Shown piece after piece: positions 11,159 to 24,656 of a stretch of 64,000 bases of DNA. The position numbers and the translations under genes are program-made. A model generated the notes under the pieces. It had not been told where the DNA came from, did not search any database, and saw only the letters and a program-made list of their open reading frames with translations. The stretch spans positions 248,001-312,000 of the forward strand of contig CBFDEM010000017.1 in assembly GCA_965603825.1 (NCBI GenBank), given 5' to 3'. How positions within the stretch are numbered: the stretch's first letter is position 1; each line of letters begins with the position of its first letter. The stretch is from Blepharisma stoltei ATCC 30299 (lineage: Eukaryota > Protista > Ciliophora).

Positions 11159-14100
11159 TTAGGCCATTATTTTGGTTAGTTTTGATCTTTGTATATCTGT
11201 TAAAGTGGCCCAGATTTGTGGAAGTGTAGGGATACCGGCAGCTTGGATCATTTGTATGATTTGTTTAACTTTTGGTACAGTTTCAGTATTAATTAGCTTA
11301 GTTTCGAGGATTTCTGCAAAGATTTTTACAACATGTTCAAGTCTTTCATTATTTTCGCCAATAGTTAAAGCCATATTGCTAATAGTAATATCAGCTAATA
11401 AGTCATGCATGAGTTTAGCTTCTTCTTTATCACGTCTAAGTGGCAATAAATTAACCCAAGCTGGGACTATTGTAGCTGAGTTAATGCTTCCTGACTGATA
11501 TTTAATAATTTTTCCTAATGCAGCCACTGCATTATCCTTAGCATGCCCATGTGACTTTTTATTTGTTCCCATAGGGAAGTTAATTGATTTATCTAAAGCA
11601 ACCAATATCTGATCAGTCCACGGTGCAAAGGCAGCAGCATTACTAAAAATAGCTAAAATTCCAATTCCATATGAAGCTGCTTGTCTAACTGCATCATTTG
11701 AATCAGCAGTAAACCTAACCAAGGCTTCTGCCAAAGAGCTCCATTTATCACCAGCTAAATCTTGTCCAACAAATTCCACCACATCATCAATCACAAATAT
11801 CGCGAATTTATGGTCTTCATCAGTCGTGTCAGGTGCTAAGAACTTGCTCAATACATGTGAATATAAGAAATTCACAATTTCCAATGAAAATTCTCTATGA
11901 GTTTTAAACAAAGATCCTAAAACTTCAGAAATTTGTGTGTGTAAAGAGTCTTCTTCGTTTTTATTGATTTCTTTAATAAGCTCATCTTCGCTGTCTTCTT
12001 CTCCAAGATCTAAAGCTTTGTTTCTGGCTCTTCTGTCTAATGATGTTTCAAGCATTTTAATTAATTTTTCACCAGAAGCAGTCACTTCTTCAGGTGTCAT
12101 GAACTTATTTTTAGGTCCTTCTATAATGACTTTTATAGCTGCTAATTGAGCGACAATAGTTTCTGTGTCATGCTCAACTGCAGTCGCTTGCCAAAGGGCT
12201 CCTAAATAAAGCCGGGCCATATTGATAACAGCTTGGTCTGACTCAGGAGTGTTTAAAGCTTTGACTGAATTAATAAGAGACCCACACAACGTGGCAGCTG
12301 CTTGCCTTATGTGTTCGTTAGGTGTGTAATTTATTAATGGCAGCACAATAGTGTTAGTTTGTTCTGCATAAGGCGCATATAGTTCTTTAAGAACGTCAAT
12401 AATTGTAATTAAAGCATGCAGAGCTAGGTCTTTGTCTTCTAAATCTGAAGTGCTTATAGACACTTTTTTATTTGCGTCAGAAACTAATGAGGCTAAATCT
12501 ACTAGTGCGTCAGGCTCTGACTCAACTGAGACTATTGCAGACGCTCCTGCAGCACTTAAAAGTCCTGGCAGAATTCCATGAAGATATGGGGCGAAATCAG
12601 CTTGTAGAGTTGCCACAATTCTTTGCCAAGCTCCTAACAAGTAAGCTTTAAGTGGGTCTGAGTCAGTTACTGAGTCCTGGATTTCTTTGAGAAGCATTAT
12701 TGTTTCAGTCACATAAGGGCTGAACATTTCTTTGCCGACAGATGTGCAGATCATGGTCATGCTTTCTATAGCTTTTCCTCTGATTCTTTGGTACTCTTTT
12801 GATGTATAAGCTTTGATAATTCTTAATAAAACGACCATCAGAGGCTGATAATAAGGGTTAAAGCACTCTTTTCCTGAGTCTGCAATGTTAGAAATTACGG
12901 TTAAAATTTGTTCAATTACAATAGAGCAGTTTTGCTGGCTGAATTTTTCTATAATGACTGGCATAATGCCAGCGATATATTCAGAGACGAGGGTTGGGCC
13001 ACAGTTTTCTATGAATTTGCCTAAAGCGTCTGCAGCACTTGCAGCAACCCTTGGGATTGAGTCAGCAATTCCAGCTACTAATAGAGGGACTACAGCTTGG
13101 TGGTGGGCAGATTGGAATTCTTCTTCATAATCTTCACTTAGCTGACCTATACAATGGTAGGCTGCATATCTGATTTTAGGATGCAGATTTGGACTTGTAT
13201 GGGCTTGGAGAACTGGGACGATTTCAGCGATTTTTTCAGCTTCTTCAATGAATTGGCCTAGTTCTGAAATAGTCATAAGGGCTGCATATTTTACTCTCCA
13301 GTCTTCTGAAGGAGTAGTAAGTGCAGATTGAATTAGTCCTAGGACTGTAGGGAGCAAAAATGACTCTCCTACACCTTCTAGCATTTTTGTTAATTGTTTT
13401 CTTCCAAGTTTTGCATAATCAATTTCGACTCCTTCTTCATCTTCGTCATCAGGCTCTTCAAACCCTTCAGGAGGACAAGCCCAGGCAGGGTCAACATCTT
13501 CATCAATACTAAGCATCATCTGGAAAATCTTTGTACATAGGTTAGTTGCAATGTCTTTTTTCTCTTGGAACTCAAGGTTCAATCTTCCAGCCAAAGCGAC
13601 AATGAACTCGAGGGCTAAATGTTTGATTCCTAAGTTCTCAGTTTGCAAGTTACAAACCCTGTCGACGAATTCATACGCAATTTGGATGCGGTTTTTGAAG
13701 TACTTTGGCTCAGTTTCTGCAAGGTCTCTGAGGTGGTTTAAGGCTTCTTCTGCGTGGATTTGGTGGTTTTCGATGATCCAGAAAGCTGAAAGAAGCATAT
13801 TTGGGATGATATCCCAGAAGAATTTCATATCGTCTTTTTCAGCAATTCCTAATAGATTGCCGAGAAAATTGAGGACTGAAAGCCTTAATTCTAATTCATT
13901 GCTGGCTAAATGGGCTATAAACACTTGTTTAAGGCTGTCTTTTTCTTTTACTAGCTCATCATTAAAGAATGTGCACAGACCCGCTAAAATGTGGCAGGCT
14001 GCTGCTGCTTGTTTTCCTTGTCCTGTAAAAGACCGGGTCAGGAACGGCAGAAGCTCAGTCCATTTGTTAGTTTCTTCATCAGCAAATAGTAAAACTGCAA

Positions 14101-14461
14101 GTTCTGCAATAACCTCGCCGATTTTTTTGAGAATTGGCCATGAGGTTTCTTGCTCAAGAGACTCAAGAAGATGGGTTTTGACGATATTTTGGACTTGGGA
14201 GCTTAATTTGTCCCAAACTTTGGTGGAGGAGTGGAGAGAAGTGAAAAGCTGACGGAGAATGACTGAGGATAAAGTGCGGATTGATGAGTCAGGAGAGTGT
14301 CTAAGGATATGCAAAAGGCAAAGGACGAGTTCATTTGGATGTTCATTTCTAAGCTGCATAAGCAAGACTTCCTGCTGCTTTCTGACTTCGTTATTGGGGC
14401 TTAGAACTGCTGTAAGCATGGTAAGAACGCTTTGGATTTGAGCCTCAGACACACCTTCCAT
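11159..14461 (-). CDS. IPO5: Importin-5 / karyopherin beta-3 (Kap121-like)
   Basis: 1100-aa HEAT-repeat ORF; SPNNEVRK, WRVKYAALMTISELG, HPKIRYAA..CIGQLS, RGKAIESMT, VRQAASYGIG, DNAVAALGKI, WVNLLPLRRD.EEA. Confidence 0.88.
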   Translation of the reverse strand: MEGVSEAQIQSVLTMLTAVLSPNNEVRKQQEVLLMQLRNEHPNELVLCLLHILRHSPDSSIRTLSSVILRQLFTSLHSSTKVWDKLSSQVQNIVKTHLLESLEQETSWPILKKIGEVIAELAVLLFADEETNKWTELLPFLTRSFTGQGKQAAAACHILAGLCTFFNDELVKEKDSLKQVFIAHLASNELELRLSVLNFLGNLLGIAEKDDMKFFWDIIPNMLLSAFWIIENHQIHAEEALNHLRDLAETEPKYFKNRIQIAYEFVDRVCNLQTENLGIKHLALEFIVALAGRLNLEFQEKKDIATNLCTKIFQMMLSIDEDVDPAWACPPEGFEEPDDEDEEGVEIDYAKLGRKQLTKMLEGVGESFLLPTVLGLIQSALTTPSEDWRVKYAALMTISELGQFIEEAEKIAEIVPVLQAHTSPNLHPKIRYAAYHCIGQLSEDYEEEFQSAHHQAVVPLLVAGIADSIPRVAASAADALGKFIENCGPTLVSEYIAGIMPVIIEKFSQQNCSIVIEQILTVISNIADSGKECFNPYYQPLMVVLLRIIKAYTSKEYQRIRGKAIESMTMICTSVGKEMFSPYVTETIMLLKEIQDSVTDSDPLKAYLLGAWQRIVATLQADFAPYLHGILPGLLSAAGASAIVSVESEPDALVDLASLVSDANKKVSISTSDLEDKDLALHALITIIDVLKELYAPYAEQTNTIVLPLINYTPNEHIRQAAATLCGSLINSVKALNTPESDQAVINMARLYLGALWQATAVEHDTETIVAQLAAIKVIIEGPKNKFMTPEEVTASGEKLIKMLETSLDRRARNKALDLGEEDSEDELIKEINKNEEDSLHTQISEVLGSLFKTHREFSLEIVNFLYSHVLSKFLAPDTTDEDHKFAIFVIDDVVEFVGQDLAGDKWSSLAEALVRFTADSNDAVRQAASYGIGILAIFSNAAAFAPWTDQILVALDKSINFPMGTNKKSHGHAKDNAVAALGKIIKYQSGSINSATIVPAWVNLLPLRRDKEEAKLMHDLLADITISNMALTIGENNERLEHVVKIFAEILETKLINTETVPKVKQIIQMIQAAGIPTLPQIWATLTDIQRSKLTKIMA

Positions 14462-14870
14462 TTCACACCGCTAAATAATAAATAGGGACTATGGGGTAAA
14501 GAATGCTAAGTAAAATGTATATGGCAATAGAAAATTTAGAAATAGGATAATTATTTTTTGGAAATAAAATTATTTAATATTGATGAAATTGTTATTTGTG
14601 CTAATTAATTTTTGATTTAATACCATATAATAAATATAATTTGTTCATATGAAAATGCTTTCAATAGGTGGCATCAGTTTGATTCAATTAGCCTTATTAA
14701 TTATTTGATGTAATTCAGGAAATATTATAATTTTATATTCCAATATAATTTAGGATTGATAATTAGATTATTATATAAATATATAATTGAAAAATAAGAC
14801 TTAATTGTAGCAATCTCTCTATTTTTTATTTAACCATTAGAAAAGATTTTTTTAGGTATGCGTCATAAAA

Positions 14871-16298
14871 ATGACCGATTCAGAAAATAATAAAACCATT
14901 ATGAAATTATCAATTTTTCGACAAATCGACGAAGATGCAAATAAGTCATGTGCTTTTTGGCACAAGCCAGATGAGAAGTCTATAATCGATATTAACACAA
15001 ATAAACTTCATCAAGGAAATCTGCTTATAACAAATGGAAAAGGATCATTTCAGAACAATTTTTATGTGCTGACAACTAGTTCATTATATAAATATAAAGA
15101 AAACAACAAAGATCTAGAATCAGTATCAAATATCAGATGGAAAATTTTAGAGCCTTTTCTAGAAGTAAATTCCCATATAGCAAGACAAGGCTTTAAGCTC
15201 CACCAAAACGAAAATTCTCAAGACTTTTACACAGATAATACCGAAGATCTAGATATCTGGGTTAGCATGCTCTCAAAAGTCTCAATTCTAACAGACGTAG
15301 AAGATGACTATGCAATTATCAAAACTCTAGGAAAAGGAAGCTACGCTACAGTATATTTAGTTGACGATTTAGATTCATATGACAACTATGCTTTAAAATC
15401 CATAGATAAATCATACATTACTAATCAAAGGGCTGTATCGACCGTAGTAAGCGAAATTGAGATTTTAAGAATGATTGACCACCCAAATGTCACGAAATTA
15501 TATAGAGTTTATGAAAGTGAGGGTCATGTACATTTGATTATGGATTATGTCCCGGGGATTAATATGCTGCAAAAAATAATGAAAGTTGAAAAATTTTCTG
15601 AAAAAAAAGCTGTGATATTTCTTTATGATATGCTGGATATTCTTTGTTACCTCCATTCTAAAAATATTGTACATAGAGATATAAAATTAGAAAATATTAT
15701 TGTCTGTTCAGAAAATCCTTTAAAATTCAAACTTCTCGACTTCGGACTGTCTGGGATTAGCAGCAGCAACGACCAAACTATAAGGTGTGGATCCCCAGGC
15801 TATATCGCCCCTGAAATTTTAAAAAAACAAAGATATGGGGTAAAAATTGACATGTTTGGGCTAGGAGTATGTTTATTTATGATTTTATCAGGGAGATCTC
15901 CTTTCCCTGGTAAAGATCTCAAAGAAATTTTGAAAGCAAATAAAAAGGGGATTATTTATTTTGCTCCAATCCATTGGAAATTAATTTCAAAAGATGCAGC
16001 TGACCTCATATTGAAATTGTGCCAACCTGAGCCTGAGCTAAGACTTTCAGCCAAAGAAGCATTAAACCATGCATGGTTGAAAAAGGTAAATAAAGAAGGA
16101 AAAGGAAGACTATCATTTTTGAAAAATGTCACAGAAATTCCGAAAAATAATCATATTTTTCCTGTCTCTTCTGTTGAAGATATCCGTGATATTTCTGTGG
16201 TTATTAATCACCCTGTTGATGGGGTTGCTAATAAGTTAATTAGAAGATCGTCAATTGGAGGAGAGGCAACTGTTGCTCATAGAAAAGTTATTAGATAG
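14871..16298 (+). CDS. Ser/Thr protein kinase (CAMK group) with N-terminal PH-like region
   Basis: LGKGSYATV, ALK, HRDIKLEN, DFG, CGSPGYIAPE motifs. Confidence 0.9.
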   Translation: MTDSENNKTIMKLSIFRQIDEDANKSCAFWHKPDEKSIIDINTNKLHQGNLLITNGKGSFQNNFYVLTTSSLYKYKENNKDLESVSNIRWKILEPFLEVNSHIARQGFKLHQNENSQDFYTDNTEDLDIWVSMLSKVSILTDVEDDYAIIKTLGKGSYATVYLVDDLDSYDNYALKSIDKSYITNQRAVSTVVSEIEILRMIDHPNVTKLYRVYESEGHVHLIMDYVPGINMLQKIMKVEKFSEKKAVIFLYDMLDILCYLHSKNIVHRDIKLENIIVCSENPLKFKLLDFGLSGISSSNDQTIRCGSPGYIAPEILKKQRYGVKIDMFGLGVCLFMILSGRSPFPGKDLKEILKANKKGIIYFAPIHWKLISKDAADLILKLCQPEPELRLSAKEALNHAWLKKVNKEGKGRLSFLKNVTEIPKNNHIFPVSSVEDIRDISVVINHPVDGVANKLIRRSSIGGEATVAHRKVIR

Positions 16299-16379
16299 AC
16301 TTATATATAGCTAAATTTTTTTGTATATAATTATTTCATATTTTAAAATCCAAATAAATATATAAAATAGAATTTAGGC

Positions 16380-16700
16380 ATCAAATTCTTGATATTTCAT
16401 GCCATAAACAGCAGATTTATGAGTTTGATGTTAGAAAAATGGCTTGAAATTCAAAAGAAGTTAAATTTTAAATAGAATATAAGTTGAATATAAAATTCTT
16501 TGTCAAAATTTCTGGTGAGGATGTATTATGCTATGAATATGATAGTTCTTTTTACAAAGGAAGACGTTTAATATCAATAAAAATGGGAAATAGGGATGCT
16601 TGGTTTAGCTAGAAAAAACTATTCACAGTGTCCCAAATCTTGAACATTATTATAAAACACTTAAAGGGATAAGTGCCAAAATTATATTAATATATTGTCA
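16380..16700 (+). pseudogene. Decayed third copy (N-terminal part) of the propeller-like/UNG-like family
   Basis: QILDISCHKQQIYEFDVRKMA(W)NSK...YKILCQ..ISGEDVLCYEYDSSFYKGR..NINKNGK matches the N-termini at 16913 and 18571 but contains TAA/TAG and frameshifts. Confidence 0.75.
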
Positions 16701-16912
16701 ATTGCGTTATATATGAATGTAATCATGCATCTGCCATCTTTCAGTGAATCCAAGCCTTAAAAATAAAGCAAGCTGAGATTATTACGAGCTAAGAATAGAA
16801 GGTACCCTGAAAAACAGCTTGCTGCTTTCTTACGGTTGAAAATGAAGAGGCTCACAATATATTTGATATCACGAAAATTTCTCTATTAGAAAGTAATAAT
16901 TAAAATAGCTAA

Positions 16913-18328
16913 ATGGATAACACTATACATACAGTACTAGATGTTGCACCCAAAAGCCGCCAGCTTCACAGAGTAGATTTAAGAACAAAGACTTATAGTT
17001 GCACTAAAATTCAAAAATTAAAAAATAGGCAAATTGACTATAAAGTTGTCTGTCAACTTTCAGATGACCAACTATTATGCTATTACTATGACAATTCCTT
17101 TAAAAAAGGACGGATATTTTATATCAACAGTAGTGGAAATATTTCTTATGGAGGTTTCTTTGATTTTCTAAAAACAGTTGCAGCACTCTGAGCACATATC
17201 TGTCAATACCTCTATAATAATGTAAAGGGAATAAAATATAAAAATTACGTTTACCTTATGGGACAACACTGTGGTATACTCAGGTATAATTTACTCAAAA
17301 ATACTTGTTCAACTGTTTTACAAATTAATTTTGGTGCCTATTCATTAGCAATAATTGATGATAAAATTTTAATAGTTGGAAGCCAAGGAAGAGCTTTAAT
17401 ATATGATTGTAGCATCAACTCAGTTTCATCTGCATTCACTTTCCAATCATTATGATCCATAAGCATAGGGACTATTAATAAGACGTTTTTTCTAATAGAT
17501 TATCAAGGGGTTGTAGTAAAATCAGGAGAATTGAATCCATACGAATGAACACTTTTAGGCAAAATTTTTTTACATCGTATAAATCTTATTGAATCTAATA
17601 TGTTGAATTATGACAATTTGACTTACTTCTTCAGCAAAGGCAATCTTTATAAGTTTGATTTAGAATATCTTAATTTCTCTAAAATTCACTTTGCTTTTGG
17701 AAAAAAAGAACCTTATTTTGAGTATACAATGCAGTCACTAAAATTTATAGATATTACAATTAATGCAGAATTAAACAGTTGGGCTGATGCATTTAAACCT
17801 ATTGAACATTATTTTATTAACCAAACAAATTATATTGAACAAATTCTGCAGATAGCCTTTAATCCTAGCGATTTCCCAATTAAATTTTTAGTGGAATATC
17901 CTGTATTTGAAAATCGAAAAGTAATAATAATTGATGGCCAAGATAGTTATGGATTAATGAACTGATTGAATTATGATCGTGAGCTATTTGGTTGTAAGAA
18001 TAAATGCCTGAGTATGCAAGATTATTGGAATAACAATATACGCAGTCTAAAAAATTGATCAAAACAAGGAGTTATTGTTCCAAATCTTTCATGAATGGTT
18101 TATAGAGGCGCGCCAATTAAAGAAATTATAGAAATATTTAAAAATGGAAAAAAAGGATTGATATGGTTATTAATTGGCAGGAATTCAAGAGTTTATTATG
18201 AATTTATCTATCAAAACGAGGATAAAGTGATTTATAGTTATGATCCTGAAGATAAACCTTTTCAGTTGGTTAATCAATTTTTAAAAGAAGCTGGAGAAGA
18301 AGAAATTGATTGGAGAATATGGATATAA
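16913..18328 (+). CDS. 471-aa protein: beta-rich (propeller-like) N-terminus plus degenerate uracil-DNA-glycosylase (UNG family 1)-like C-terminal domain, copy 1
   Basis: Four track ORFs are one frame via six TGA. C-terminus SWADAF..KVIIIDGQDSY..SLKN(W)SKQGVIVPN..KKGLIWLLIG..KVIYSYDP..KPFQLVNQFLKEAGEEEIDW parallels UNG motifs in order. Confidence 0.8.
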
Positions 18329-18570
18329 TTCTTAATAAATTACAGAAAAAATCTACGTATTTCATTAAGATATTATTTTAGCTTCCTTTTGATGGGTAAG
18401 ATTTCAATTTTAATAGTTACTTCAATATATATTATTTAATTATCTAAACTTTTCAATAAATATTTTGAAGCCTATATTAATTATCAAAAAAACTTCAATC
18501 TTTCTTAATTTCGGTAAATTTTTCTTAATTAGAAAACTCGGACTAAGCTTAACAAAAATATAATAAATTA

Positions 18571-19992
18571 ATGGAAAGCTCCATGAACACAATTCTTGAT
18601 GCTTCATCTAGCAGCTGCGAACTGTATGAGGTTGACTTAAGAACAATGGCTTATAAGTCAAATAAAATCAAAATTCCAAAGGATAGAAGAAAATTTATAT
18701 ATAAAACTCTCTGCCAAATTTCTGATGAACAACTATTATGTTTTCGTTATGATAGCCAAGTGAATATAGGAAGAATTTTTTATATTGATAATAATGGAAA
18801 GATAGCCCATGGGTCTTGGGTTAATTTACCTAATAATATATCAATACGCCTTCGAGCTTATAAAAATTATTGCAAAAACATAAAAGGAATAAAATACCAA
18901 AACAATGTTTATATTATATTCGATTATTTTTATATTTTAAGGTACAATTTATTGAAAAATATTTGCTTGAGCGGAATTTGCATGGAATTATATAAATGCT
19001 ATTCATGTGCAATAATTGAAGACAAAATTTTAATATCCAATGTAGGTAGCAAAACTTTTATATATGATTGCAGCATCAATTCTATTTCATTTATTTCTGA
19101 AAAGGTTCTATGATATGAAAATTTTGTAGGAGCAATTGATAGAAGTTTCTTTATGATAACTTATTCTGGTGTTATTATGATATCAGAAGAATTAAATCCA
19201 TACAAATGAAATATCATTGGTAAAACCACCTTAAATCCAAATCATTATTTCCCATCATCCAGCTTTAACTATGGTAATTTTGCATTTATTTTATGCAAAA
19301 ACAATTTATATAAATTTGATTTGAAAAACGTTGAATTTAAAAAATTTAATTTTCCTATTAATGGAAAAGGAACAGTTTCTGTGCAAAATATATTATCTTT
19401 AAAATTTATGTCTTTCACAAATGAGAATAACCTACATAGTTGGGTTCATGCCTTTAGACCAATTAAACATTATTTTAAAGACTCTGAAAAAAACTATATT
19501 GAGTCAATTCTTTGTATGATTTTCCAGATTGAGGGCTTTCCCCCTAAATTTGCTTTTGAGTATCCTGCATTAGAGGAAAGAAGAGTCATAATAATTAATA
19601 ATGATTATTGATTTGATATGAGAAGCTATTTAAAGAACGATCCTAAATTATTTAATTACCAAAAAGAGTACAGCGATTCTATGAAATATATATTTGATTT
19701 CTGCATTTTTAGTCTTAAAAATTGATCAAAGCAAGGGGTAATTATACCAGACATTAGTTTTATGAAAAGAAATCATGTGACATATGAAGAAATAATTGAA
19801 ACTTTCAAAAATGGAAAAAAAGGGTTGATATGAGTTCTTATTGGAAAATTATCAATGCCTTATCTTAAATTTATTAATCAGAATGAGGATAAAGCTATTG
19901 TAAGTTATTCTCCTTTTGATCACCCTTTTCGCCAAGTCAATGAATACTTAAGGGAAACTGGAGAAAACGAAATTGACTGGAAGATATGGTAG
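18571..19992 (+). CDS. 473-aa paralog of the propeller-like/UNG-like fusion, copy 2
   Basis: Continuous frame via TGA to TAG 19990-19992; collinear with copy 1 (SWVHAF, RVIIINNDY, SLKN(W)SKQGVIIPD, KKGLI(W)VLIG, HPFRQVNEYLRETGENEIDW). Confidence 0.8.
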
Positions 19993-20106
19993 AAAGCATA
20001 TTAGCTGCATTTAAAATAAAACAAATTATTTATTGAGCTGACTATTGAATAATACTAAAATTAATGTCATTTAAATATGAATACATACTATTAATTTTCA
20101 AATAAA

Positions 20107-20583
20107 ATGATTCAATATAATACAATCCTCAAGCTTATAGCTGATATTGACAAAACTCAAAAGTCAATTTTGAATATGGAAAAGCCTGACTTTTCACATT
20201 ACGAAGTCCAAATCTCTCAAATTTCTGAAGAAATCCAAGCATTAAATAACACAGACAGCTTAAGACGTTTGGAAAGCGAAATTAAAACTTTAGAAGGCCA
20301 AATTGAGCATGAAGATATATCTTTAGAACTTCTAAAAGAAAGCAACCTTGAAACTCAAGAGAAAATAAAAAATATTGGAAAAGATATAGCTGACTATGAA
20401 TACCGCCTTCGAGAATGTAAAAAAAATTACGAAAATGAATCCAAAAAAATAGACACGCTTCTTCATGAACAATTGCTACAGAATATCGAAAGAAGAAATA
20501 ATCTTCAAAGATTGCAGCTTCAGTGCATTGATAATAAAAGAAATAGCAGATCTTCTGTAATTCCTCCAAGTCTCATTAAATAG
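20107..20583 (+). CDS. Hypothetical coiled-coil protein
   Basis: 158-aa heptad-rich ORF ending TAG. Confidence 0.65.
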   Translation: MIQYNTILKLIADIDKTQKSILNMEKPDFSHYEVQISQISEEIQALNNTDSLRRLESEIKTLEGQIEHEDISLELLKESNLETQEKIKNIGKDIADYEYRLRECKKNYENESKKIDTLLHEQLLQNIERRNNLQRLQLQCIDNKRNSRSSVIPPSLIK

Positions 20584-20681
20584 TGTAAAATAATCTTATT
20601 CATAGTCATTTAATTTCTGTTCATTTCGATACAAGCTAATATAAAAATACGCGCGAAAAAGATGCTATTAGCATTATAAAA

Positions 20682-23600
20682 ATGTCTAGTAAGCCCAAAA
20701 AGACCAGCAGTCCAAAAGATGCCACAATTGAAGAAATTTATCAAAAGAAAACTCCATTAGAACACATATTGCTTCGCCCAGACACTTATGTAGGCTCTAT
20801 AGAGCTCCAAGACAGCAAACTGTGGGTATGGGATTCCATTACTAACAAAATGGTATATCGGCAAATTCAGTATGTCCCAGGCTTATACAAAATATTTGAC
20901 GAAATCTTAGTAAATGCACAAGATAACTTTCAGAGAGACAAGAAAATGAATTCCATACAAATCACCATTGACCGCGAAAATGGGATGATAAGTATCTGAA
21001 ATAATGGCAAAGGAATCCCTGTAGTCATTCACCAAGAACACCAAGTTTATGTCCCTGAGCTTATTTTTGGTCAACTTCTGACTTCTAGTAACTATGATGA
21101 CAGTCAGAAAAAAGTTACAGGTGGCAGAAATGGATATGGGGCCAAACTGACTAATGTTTTTTCTAAAACTTTTATAGTTGAAACTGCAGACCCTGAAAAT
21201 AAGCAGATTTTTACTATGGAATGGACTCAAAACATGACTAAAAAGTCCAAGCCGAAGATCACGAAATATAATGGAAAAGGAAGCTATACTCGCGTTACGT
21301 TTTATCCTGACCTACAGAGGTTTGGTATGAATTGCCTAGATAAAGATATAATTGATTTAATGACAAAAAGAGCTTATGATATGGCAGGATGCATAGGGAA
21401 AAAAGTAAAAATATTTATTAATGATTTTGAAATTCCTATTAAATCGTTCGAAGATTATGTTGGGTTATATTTGCAAAATGAAGGAACCCCAAAAATATAT
21501 AGCCAATATGGAAATAGATGGGAAATCGCTGCAACTATAAGTGATGGCACATTTCAGCAGGTTTCTTTTGTTAATGGAATTTGTACATCAAAAGGGGGAA
21601 CTCACGTAAACCATATAACTGATCAATTAATTGATGCAATTTCAGCAGCAATTTCAAAAAAGCATAAAAAAATTGAAGTCAAAAATAACCAAATAAAACA
21701 GCATTTGTGGGTATTTATTAATTGCTTGATCGAAAACCCTTGTTTTGATTCTCAAACTAAAGAAAATATGACACTTAAGCCTTCTAATTTTGGCTCGAAA
21801 TGCGAAATTGATGAGCAATTTTTGAAAAATTTAATAAAATGCGGGATTATTGAAAGCATTGTTGCATCTTCCAATGCAAAAGCTGAAGTCCAGCTTGGGA
21901 AAATAGTAAAATCAAAGAAAAATGAAAAATTATTTATTAATAAATTGGAGGATGCAAATTTAGCTGGAACTAGCCAAGGAAATAAATGCTCATTAATTTT
22001 AACTGAAGGAGATAGTGCTAAAGCCTTAGCTATGGCTGGAATTGAAGTGCTTGGAAGAGACAAATATGGAGTTTTCCCATTAAAAGGGAAATTATTAAAC
22101 GTAAGAGAAGCTTCACACAAGCAGCTTATGGGGAATGAAGAAATACAAAATATTATGAAAATTGTGGGGCTACAGCCTAATAAAGAATATACAGATGTCA
22201 ATGGGCTTCGATATGGGTCAATTATGATAATGGCTGACCAAGATCTAGACGGTTCACACATAAAAGGCTTAATCATCAATTTCATCCATTTCTTCTGGCC
22301 AAGCTTGCTTAAAAAAGACGGCTTTTTAAAAGAATTCATCACTCCTATAGTAAAAGCCACAAATGGGTCTCTAACGGTCTCATTTTTCACAATAAACGAA
22401 TTTTCAGAGTGGCTTAAAGAAGCCAATCATGACGAATGGACCACAAAATACTACAAAGGTCTTGGTACCTCTACAAGTAAAGAAGCCAAAGAATATTTCA
22501 GTAACCTTGGGAAGCACCAAATTGATTTTTCCTGGGAAAATGATACAAGAGAAAGTGACGCCATTGATATGGCTTTTAGTAAAGCTCGAGCAGATGATCG
22601 CAAAAAATGGCTGGCCAATTTAAGCCCAGAAACTTATTTAGATATGAATGTTGAAAAAGTGTCTTATTATGATTTTATACATAAAGAATTGGTACTTTTT
22701 TCTAATTATGATAATATTAGGTCAATTCCAAGCTTAATTGATGGACTTAAACCAGGACAAAGAAAAATCATTTTTGCTTGCTTTAAAAGAAAATTGTCAT
22801 CAGAAATAAAAGTGGCTCAGCTTGCTGGGTATGTGGCTGAACATTCTGCTTACCATCACGGAGAACAGTCATTAGCAGCCACTATTGTAGGACTTTCCCA
22901 AAATTTTGTAGGGTCAAATAATTTGAATTTATTGGTACCAATTGGACAGTTTGGTACAAGAGCAATGGGTGGAAAAGATAATGCGAGCCCGAGATATATT
23001 TTTACAAATTTGTCAGATATAACGAGAAAATTATTTATACAAGATGATGATAATGTAGTGAGTTATCAGAATGAAGAAGGACAAAGAATTGAGCCTTATT
23101 ATTATGTGCCTGTAATTCCTACTGTGTTGGTGAATGGAGCAGAAGGGATTGGAACTGGGTGGAGTACGTTTATAGCTCCACATAATCCTATTGAGATTAT
23201 AAACTCGTATAGAAAAAGAATTGAAGGGTGCAGATTTGAAGAAAATAAGATTTCCCCGTGGTTTAGAGGGTTCACTGGGACTATTGAGAATGTAGGAAAC
23301 TCTTTTGAAATCAGAGGGAAATTCGAAACAATAAATGAAGACTGAATAAGAATTGCTGAGCTGCCGATTGGAAAATGGACAAGCGACTATAAAAGCTTTT
23401 TAGAAAGCTTAATGCAAGAAGAAGATGCTTTTATCACTGAATTTAAAGAATACCATACAGACGACAGAGTAGAGTTTCATGTCTGCATTCCAACATTGAC
23501 TGAGCTTCCTGCTGACCAATTAATGAAAAAACTAAAACTTATCTCCACCCTTAACTTATCAAATTTAGTTTTATTCGACAGAGACAGAAAAATCCACAAA

Positions 23601-24656
23601 TACTCAAACGTCTATGAAATAATGGAAGAGCATTTTAATGTAAGAGCAGACTTTTACCAAAAAAGAAAAGACTATTTAGTAGCAAAATTAACAAAAGAAG
23701 TCAAAATTCTATCAAATAAAGTCAGATTTATTAACGCACTCTCAGATGGAGAAATTTCTGTATATAATAGGATGAAAACTTTAATTGTAGGAGATTTAAA
23801 AAGAAAAGACTTTATGTCAGCAAGCGAGCTGGATAATATTTTTAAAGAATCAAATAACTCTGATTTAGATGAAGATGAAAGAAGTGGGATAAGGAAAAAA
23901 ATACCTTTAGATGAGTATGATTATTTATTAAATCTACCTCTATGATCATTCACGTTTGAAAAGGTACGCCAGCTGAAAGCTGAAGAAGAAGAAAAATCAG
24001 CACTGCTTGAAAAATTAATAAATACCACAATTTTTGAAATGTGAATAAAAGATTTAGATGATCTGCAGCAAACTATTGAAAGTCTATGGAATAAAGAAGA
24101 AAATTCAAGAGAAAACCAAATTGTTAGTAATATAAATAAGAGAAAAAGAGGGAAAAAAGATTCTCCAGAGGCCATTAAGCCGGCTAAAAAACTAGAATTA
24201 AACAGTAATGAAGGAAAAAAAGCTGTGAATAAAGAAAAAATAGTTCAGAAAAAATTGGCAGCATTTATTGAAGATAAGGCAGATATGGATATAGAAGAAA
24301 ACAAAGAAGAAAAATTAGAAAATGCGAAAAATACATTGAAAATTAGTGATAAACTCGAGAAATTTCAGAAAGATGAACCACAACAAAATTCTATTGCTCC
24401 GATAAAAGAAGACTTCACAGGAAATTTTAATGCCCTGAAAGAGCTTCTAAAAAGTGTACCTTTATCGGAGTCTGGAGAAAGCAGTGAAGGTTCCGAATTT
24501 AGTAATCCATTTGGAGGCTCATTAAAAAAGAAAAGACCAAGAGATGAAGAATCAAATTCTAGCAGTTCATTAGGTGATCCAACAAAAACTGCTAAGTTGA
24601 GTAAAAATCGTTCCTCTAAGCCCCAGTCTTCAGCTATTTCCAACGATGAAGACTAA
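20682..24656 (+). CDS. TOP2: DNA topoisomerase II
   Basis: EHILLRPDTYVGS, FDEILVNA, GGRNGYGAK, TEGDSA, PLKGKLLN, ADQDLDGSHIKG, YYKGLGTS, ASPRYIFT (catalytic Tyr); four track ORFs joined by TGA=Trp (e.g. ISI-W-NNGKGIP). Confidence 0.97.

Follow-up and report, generated by a model that had tools for sequence, protein, structure and literature searches.

Tandem genes in Blepharisma stoltei that probably join a Kelch-like propeller to a degenerate, non-catalytic derivative of family-1 uracil-DNA glycosylase

We analyzed a 64,000-nucleotide stretch of the genome of the ciliate Blepharisma stoltei ATCC 30299 (GenBank assembly GCA_965603825.1, contig CBFDEM010000017.1, positions 248,001 to 312,000 of the forward strand; this whole stretch is called the window), which carries a tandem pair of genes, copy 1 and copy 2, whose products appear to combine a propeller-like N-terminal domain with a C-terminal domain derived from family-1 uracil-DNA glycosylase (UNG). 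The somatic genome of this strain was previously shown to consist of 41 Mbp in 64 telomere-to-telomere sequences, to be AT-rich, to use UGA as a tryptophan codon and to contain introns of 15-16 nt (PMC9942806). Accordingly, TGA was read as Trp throughout, and the + strand of window positions 16300-20100 was translated on this basis; searches of the organism's own genome used the 41.46-Mb assembly of 64 contigs. The genes, their domains and a neighboring relic are as follows.

16379-16671, + strand: relic (pseudogene fragment) left from the N-terminal part of a third tandem copy, identified by tblastn, own-genome search and three-frame translation.
16913-18328, + strand: copy 1 gene; 471 amino acids (aa), 6 in-frame TGA codons, TAA stop; entry P0001 of the public protein library.
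16913-17737, + strand: N-terminal all-beta domain of copy 1 (aa 1-275), identified by its ESM Atlas neighbors, strands in an AlphaFold2 (AF2) model and own-genome homologues.
17747-18322, + strand: UNG-derived domain of copy 1 (aa 279-470), identified by Protein Data Bank (PDB) profile, hhalign, motif alignment and structure prediction.
18571-19992, + strand: copy 2 gene; 473 aa, 5 in-frame TGA codons, TAG stop; entry P0002 of the public protein library.
18571-19395, + strand: N-terminal propeller-like domain of copy 2 (aa 1-275), 41% identical to that of copy 1.
19408-19989, + strand: UNG-derived domain of copy 2 (aa 280-473), identified by PDB profile, hidden Markov model (HMM) scores and motif alignment.

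A preliminary description, made from the sequence alone, had proposed that the fragments at this locus become two collinear paralogs of ~470 aa once TGA is read as Trp, and our translation bore this out with uninterrupted open reading frames (ORFs) of 471 and 473 aa. The two proteins align collinearly with 45% identity (blastp, E 2e-132), and both P0001 and P0002 are present in the representative-protein library. At the local base composition, where stops would occur at ~6.7% per codon, the chance of 471 codons free of TAA and TAG is ~5e-15. In-frame TGA codons lie at aa 93, 181, 212, 351, 382 and 394 of copy 1 and at aa 181, 213, 347, 385 and 421 of copy 2, with three positions common to both. 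One of these, in the segment KNWSKQG (W382 of copy 1, W385 of copy 2), corresponds to a Trp present in 50/50 aligned UNG-type sequences, and the assignment of TGA to Trp is thereby independently supported. The tandem family sits in the part of the window with the lowest GC content (positions 16001-20000; 29.2% and 26.4%, compared with 30-40% elsewhere).

The same description had placed a decayed third copy upstream of the pair. This relic is real: positions 16379-16564 match aa 6-67 of both copies (tblastn E 8e-8 and 2e-7) and contain an in-frame TAA, and the own-genome search recovered the relic at E 3.6e-5, with 1 TGA and 1 TAA inside. Its continuation to ~16671 is weak and frame-shifted.

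Comparison of copy 1 with copy 2 gave a nonsynonymous divergence (dN) of 0.455, a synonymous divergence (dS) of 1.26 and a dN/dS of ~0.36, a rough value given the nearly saturated dS and the extreme composition (26-29% GC). The ratio was 0.385 for the propeller half and 0.33 for the UNG-like half, and pN/pS was below 1 in nearly all 30-codon windows. The direction of the signal is clear, suggesting that both domains have been under purifying selection. The tandem pair and the relic, together with a divergent copy elsewhere in the genome that is described below, support a family that would evolve by local duplication and decay, as the birth-and-death model put forward earlier for this locus had supposed.

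To place the C-terminal domain, copy 1 aa 275-471 were compared by phmmer with all 177,635 distinct PDB sequences; every match up to E 10 (7/7) was a UNG, the best at E 6.4e-4. A profile built from the two paralogues gave 29/29 matches to family-1 UNG, the best being the Ung of Bacillus weidmannii (8ail, E 2.2e-8). For comparison in the other direction, an alignment of 68 UNG sequences was assembled, comprising the host UNG and 67 of 69 bacterial UNG loci that had been fetched with the genome's own UNG as bait. The HMM of this alignment scored copy 1 at 19.8 bits and copy 2 at 19.6 bits, with a maximum of 8.3 bits over 2000 shuffles; across the shuffle controls, shuffled sequences peaked at 5.8-8.3 bits and the observed scores were 15.6-19.8 bits. 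When the paralogue profile was aligned with the 68-UNG alignment by hhalign, the probability was 98.3% and the E value 8.6e-14, with query positions 5-196 covering UNG columns 1-226, i.e., the whole catalytic domain. Identity of the window copies to UNGs is 17-25%.

Structure prediction pointed in the same direction. In the ESM Atlas single-sequence model of copy 1 (predicted template modeling score, pTM, 0.51), the nearest structures to residues 278-471 were all UDGs of PF03167, at a template modeling (TM) score of 0.64 over 166 residues, and the clusters nearest to this domain in the Atlas feature space were likewise UDGs. An AF2 model of the C-terminal domain, which was computed from an alignment that included UNGs and is a consistency check only, reached a predicted local distance difference test score (pLDDT) of 79 and a pTM of 0.79; in Foldseek its top 50 matches were all UNG (E down to 5.5e-8, TM 0.5-0.6). 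Results from these comparisons support the assignment of the C-terminal ~195 aa to family-1 UNG, as a genuine domain that has degenerated and would have descended from a complete catalytic domain. The likeness to UNG that had been read from the sequence was thus recovered by the PDB profile, by hhalign, by Foldseek and by the UDG-only Atlas neighbors, though not by Pfam, where the UDG family gave no match.

All of the UNG-like motifs quoted in the preliminary description were found, in the order in which it gave them. The following list gives the location of each motif that we mapped.

17777-17794, + strand: SWADAF (copy 1).
17936-17950, + strand: GQDSY (copy 1); Gln, Asp and Tyr kept, the following His lost.
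18050-18085, + strand: KNWSKQGVIVPN (copy 1), including GVIVPN; specificity Asn kept.
18149-18178, + strand: KKGLIWLLIG (copy 1).
18236-18253, + strand: SYDPED (copy 1); catalytic His replaced by Asp.
18299-18313, + strand: EEIDW (copy 1).
19597-19611, + strand: NNDYW (copy 2), in place of GQDPY.
19717-19752, + strand: GVIIPD (copy 2); specificity Asn replaced by Asp.
19903-19920, + strand: SYSPFD (copy 2); catalytic His replaced by Ser.

The catalytic and DNA-contact residues of family-1 UNG have established roles, and the window copies could be compared with them element by element. Both keep the hydrophobic core of UNG and the succession of its secondary-structure elements; retained are helix 1 (SW...), the FP of the IYPP turn, strand beta-1 (KVIII), the L..W..QGV segment with beta-2, beta-3 (GLIWLLIG), beta-4 and the C-terminal helix with G...EIDW. 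The water-activating loop with the catalytic Asp, GQDPYH in UNG, has become GQDSY in copy 1 and NNDYW in copy 2. A deletion of ~11 residues removes HGxxQAxGLxFS, including the uracil-stacking Phe, from copies 1 and 2; the remnant in copy 1, GLMNW, offers no Phe at the matching position. Of the DNA-pinching loops, the 4-Pro loop reads DREL or DPKL in place of PPSL, and the Gly-Ser loop reads IGR or IGK in place of WGS/WGA, so that its Ser is Arg or Lys; the 11 residues following beta-2 (SHxxxGWExFT) are deleted. Finally, the Leu-intercalation loop (HPSPLSxxRGFFG) has lost 10-11 residues in both copies. These results agree with the earlier residue calls: no GLxFS segment, no Leu loop, and Asp (copy 1) or Ser (copy 2) in place of the catalytic His.

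The UNG-derived domain is also acidic, with an isoelectric point (pI) of 5.0 in copy 1 and 6.5 in copy 2, compared with 9.3 for the catalytic domain of the genome's true UNG. Conservation between the paralogues within the C-terminal domain is lowest at aa 347-376 (27% identity), where the GLxFS segment and the 4-Pro loop used to be; in the core strands the two sequences hardly differ, e.g., SLKNWSKQGVI and FKNGKKGLIW. At the level of sequence, this pattern is the signature predicted for a fold that is retained for a purpose other than catalysis.

The genome encodes a canonical UNG as well, at C36:632040-632708 (+ strand), 281 aa from the start MDKFVV and without in-frame TGA, in which GQDPY, GLSFS, GVFMLN, HPSPLS and EIDW are all intact. 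A genome-wide scan with PF03167 detected this gene only. Because the canonical UNG is present, uracil repair does not depend on the tandem genes. The inactive or repurposed glycosylase fold that had been proposed for the tandem genes fits the deleted loops and lost residues, from which we infer that the domain is probably inactive.

The N-terminal half had been described as propeller-like, which its structural neighbors corroborated. Residues 3-275 of the ESM Atlas model of copy 1 resemble beta-propellers of the PQQ, NHL, YncE and BamB types (TM 0.60-0.68 over 203-250 residues), and in an AF2 model with a pLDDT of 38 the N-terminal strands were grouped in fours. Searches of the host genome then revealed a wider family. 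At C29:308786-317437 and C29:301565-304876 there are at least 7 stand-alone ORFs of ~266-289 aa, together with broken fragments, that are homologous to the N-terminal propeller; against the full-length profile they gave E values of 2e-14 to 7e-10, covered only positions 13-264 of the N-terminal part and contained no UNG-like part. In addition, longer proteins (395-498 aa) encoded at C35:76830-80126, C15:82034-85351 and C33:459209-462526 carry the propeller family at their C-terminus, and at the N-terminus of the C35 protein lies a Cys/His-rich region that is B-box-like. The C33 protein gave a Kelch_6 match (E 9.4e-5, 22.7 bits, relative to a cut-off of 25.3), and Kelch_1 was also sub-threshold. 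Altogether, the N-terminal ~275 aa of the window proteins are a probable Kelch-like beta-propeller, an assignment to which the structural models lend moderate support. The propeller of the stand-alone and B-box-type genes is homologous to the N-terminal domain of the window genes, but the latter differ from the longer C35, C15 and C33 proteins in that their propeller is N-terminal and its partner is the UNG-derived domain. In the three longer proteins, the region preceding the propeller looked coiled-coil when read by eye, and the layout resembles that of TRIM proteins.

A third member of the UNG-fused family was found on contig C31.

C31:16775-18274, - strand: divergent third propeller plus degenerate-UNG gene; intact 499-codon ORF with 7 in-frame TGA codons.

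This gene surfaced with a profile that combined the window copies with UNGs; piece-wise genome searches and searches with the two-sequence profile returned the two window copies only. No UNG-like copy beyond the C31 member was found in the genome, and these counts are lower bounds. Its N-terminus is 24% identical to that of copy 1 (E 5e-10), and hhalign matched almost all of its C-terminal domain to the UNG alignment (96.4%, E 1.1e-9). The stretch AVFMLWGKEARKFSALIDQSKHLVIKNC, around beta-3/beta-4, is nearer to real UNG than the window copies are. At the GQD position the C31 member has ISMP, at the specificity Asn it has Ser (IIVLSP), and it is without the terminal IDW. Approximately 21 residues are deleted at the GLxFS segment, and His-Pro is deleted with an SLLS remnant left in place. 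The UNG-like domain of this member is strongly basic (pI 9.9). A FastTree analysis that included 14 propeller domains put the three UNG-fused members in one group (support 0.80), so a single ancient fusion behind all three is weakly favored by the sequences. Beside the C31 gene, at C31:~15300-16200, long open frames on both strands would encode Cys/Gly/Thr/Ser-rich low-complexity peptides; this region, ~15 kb from the contig end, looks compositionally odd or repetitive.

So far the family is confined to this genome. Among 1.84 billion representative proteins, a 139-position profile from the middle of the protein recovered only copies 1 and 2 and a spurious repeat protein. No other homologue was found in a library of 5.8 billion clusters, whether the query was the complete protein or the C-terminal profile, and none of the window proteins had a homologue in IMG/VR or in the JGI metagenomes. 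Phage records yielded only weak matches to ordinary UNG-like genes (E of at least 0.004). A count of the family across heterotrich genomes, suggested in the preliminary description, thus came to zero members outside this genome in the collections searched, and within the genome it was extended by the member on C31. A literature search found no paper that combines a UDG domain with a propeller. The architecture of propeller plus UNG-derived domain is apparently undescribed, and the earlier statement that no such protein was known agrees with these searches of protein libraries and literature.

The descent of the UNG domain was examined in a maximum-likelihood tree, where the window copies lie on a branch of ~6 substitutions per site beside no particular lineage. 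Profile scores against the 67 bacterial UNGs and the host UNG spanned 1 to 27 bits and followed no taxonomic pattern, and the C31 member ranked the host UNG 14th of 67. On the basis of the tree, the scores and this rank, we rejected both a clearly host-derived origin and a clearly horizontal acquisition.

Among known systems, the domain is like family-1 UNG (human UNG, E. coli Ung, Bacillus Ung and the C36 UNG) in containing the whole catalytic domain in the same order, from the SW helix to ...IDW; unlike these enzymes, the window domain is fused behind a propeller, is acidic rather than basic, has deleted loops and falls below the Pfam threshold. Among viral UNGs, vaccinia D4 in the polymerase processivity complex and the gamma-herpesvirus UNGs in the replisome are reported to have replication roles that do not depend on catalytic residues (PMC4450493, PMC5934625, 10.1101/2023.05.19.541466). 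The likeness is that a UNG fold serves as a protein-binding or structural element. However, the viral proteins remain active glycosylases, have intact DNA-binding loops and stand alone, whereas the window genes belong to a cellular eukaryote, and their UNG-derived domain has lost the catalytic and DNA-contact elements and is fused to a propeller. UDG or UDG-like domains are also fused to A-family DNA polymerases of phages (SPO1-like, T5-like and T-modified-DNA phages), and a processivity role has been proposed for some of them (PMC3201878, PMC13697223). In these fusions, too, a UDG-fold domain was recruited as a module of a larger protein, but the partner is a polymerase and not a propeller, and some of the domains are active. 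None of the phage UDG-polymerase fusions was among the matches of the searches with the window proteins. Taken as analogies, these reports provide precedent for the non-catalytic use of UNG/UDG folds (PMC4450493, PMC5934625, 10.1101/2023.05.19.541466, PMC3201878).

The explanation that we favor, and consider probable, is that the tandem genes are selectively maintained and encode a lineage-specific UNG pseudoenzyme, in which a Kelch-like propeller is joined to a UNG-derived, non-catalytic module. To judge from its residues and deleted loops, the UNG-derived domain would no longer flip or excise uracil; because the DNA-flipping elements and most catalytic elements are gone, it should be incapable of pinch-push-pull excision. 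It would instead be kept as a structural or binding module, with the propeller, from a family that this genome uses both alone and after a B-box-like region, supplying a second recognition surface, and the whole protein may act as an adaptor or scaffold and not as a repair enzyme. The features generally expected of a pseudoenzyme were found here, i.e., a fold retained in the predicted structures, lost catalytic residues, and a dN/dS of ~0.36 with intact ORFs.

Several observations weigh against this explanation. The adaptor role is deduced solely from the anatomy of the domains. The assignment of the propeller draws on an Atlas model of moderate confidence (pLDDT 0.62); self-alignment by hhalign detected no internal repeats in the N-terminal domain, no Pfam family matched it above threshold (PorZ_N_b_propeller at E 0.017 and DUF1668 at E 0.08 are noise-level), and a profile of the propeller half had no match among the PDB sequences. 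For the C-terminal domain, Pfam UDG PF03167 was unmatched even at E 10, whether full proteins, C-terminal halves or stop-free pieces were searched; the good AF2 model depends on the UNGs in its alignment, and the full-length AF2 model from the two paralogues alone was unusable (pLDDT 38). The dN/dS value is rough for the reasons given with it. Finally, copy 1 retains Gln-Asp-x-Tyr and the specificity Asn, and may have a residual or altered pocket.

A bolder form of the pseudoenzyme explanation remains tentative, and we regard it as possible at best. UNG is among the most conserved of enzymes, and family-1 members are regarded as nearly invariant, dedicated excisers of uracil. The family described here might be the first natural family-1 UNG pseudoenzyme lineage, a ciliate-specific propeller plus UNG-fold 'reader' whose pocket or surface was remodeled for a new ligand (perhaps a protein, a free base or nucleotide, or some modified feature of a nucleic acid), with diversification by birth and death. 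If this is true, a cellular organism can turn even the UNG fold to non-catalytic use as a module. The family would then offer a natural 'minimal UNG core' for separating the structural from the catalytic parts of the fold, and a new partner for the expanded propeller repertoire of Blepharisma. Its practical weight is limited for now, since the family comes from one genome only and is known from genes alone.

Of the competing explanations, the one that fits best, albeit an unlikely one, is that these are young, lineage-specific ORFs drifting to pseudogenes, in which a UNG-like domain decays after duplication and fusion with no maintained function. The decayed sibling lies directly upstream, the catalytic motifs erode progressively from copy 1 to copy 2, the GC content of 26-29% is the lowest in the window, and no homologue was found in the 1.84 billion representatives, the 5.8 billion clusters or the viral and metagenome scans. 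However, drift does not account well for three ORFs of 471-499 codons that are intact in AT-rich DNA where stops are expected at ~6.7% per codon, nor for a dN/dS of ~0.36 in both domains, rough as this value is, after a dS of at least 1.26. Moreover, the paralogues differ very little in the core strands of the UNG fold, and the same architecture persists in the much older C31 paralogue.

Less likely still is the hypothesis of an enzyme with altered specificity, in copy 1 at least: either a DNA glycosylase or one that binds bases or nucleotides, working through the retained pocket residues. GQDSY and the Asn of GVIVPN are kept in this copy. Single substitutions of the pocket Tyr or Asn of UNG change base specificity, and enzymes of the UDG superfamily tolerate varied catalytic motifs, both of which speak for such an activity. 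Yet copy 1 has neither the segment with the uracil-stacking Phe nor the 4-Pro loop, the catalytic His or the Leu-intercalation loop, and its domain is acidic (pI 5.0). Copy 2 and the C31 member, whose ORFs are equally conserved, are without the Asp motif and the Asn, and the pocket is for this reason not the apparent target of selection. Copy 1 may have residual or altered activity, but this is not the property that selection maintains throughout the family.

We also weighed the suggestion, made when the locus was first described, that the UNG-like domain acts as a decoy, titrating away proteinaceous UNG inhibitors of viruses or symbionts (of the Ugi, p56 or SAUGI type), and we now judge it very improbable. 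A decoy would be a UNG look-alike that needs no activity, and the best sequence matches of the domain are UNGs crystallized with such inhibitors, but these matches reflect crystallization choices. Ugi, p56 and SAUGI-type inhibitors mimic DNA and grip the DNA-binding face of UNG, including the protruding Leu of the HPSPLS loop. The window copies have lost the Leu loop, carry altered sequences in the other DNA-contact loops and have the opposite surface charge, so the face to which the inhibitors bind is gone; in addition, no inhibitor-like gene or viral context was evident among the neighboring genes, as read by eye from the translation.

Lastly, we give almost no credence to the view that chance or composition produced the similarity to UNG and that the C-terminal fold is unrelated: the lack of a Pfam UDG match, the 17-25% identity to UNGs and the Foldseek TM of 0.5-0.6 would allow it, but all significant PDB sequence matches are UNG, the alignment is collinear over the whole domain (E 8.6e-14), shuffled sequences never came near the observed scores, an independent language-model structure has UDG neighbors only, and the very different C31 paralogue matches UNG independently.

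The surroundings of the tandem pair in the window were read by eye from their translations only. Upstream, the minus-strand ORF at 12002-14470 appears importin/karyopherin-like, and the + strand ORF at 14856-16295 appears protein-kinase-like. Downstream, a short + strand ORF at 20107-20580 looks coiled-coil, and it is followed by a large + strand ORF (20640-24500+) whose N-terminus resembles DNA topoisomerase II.

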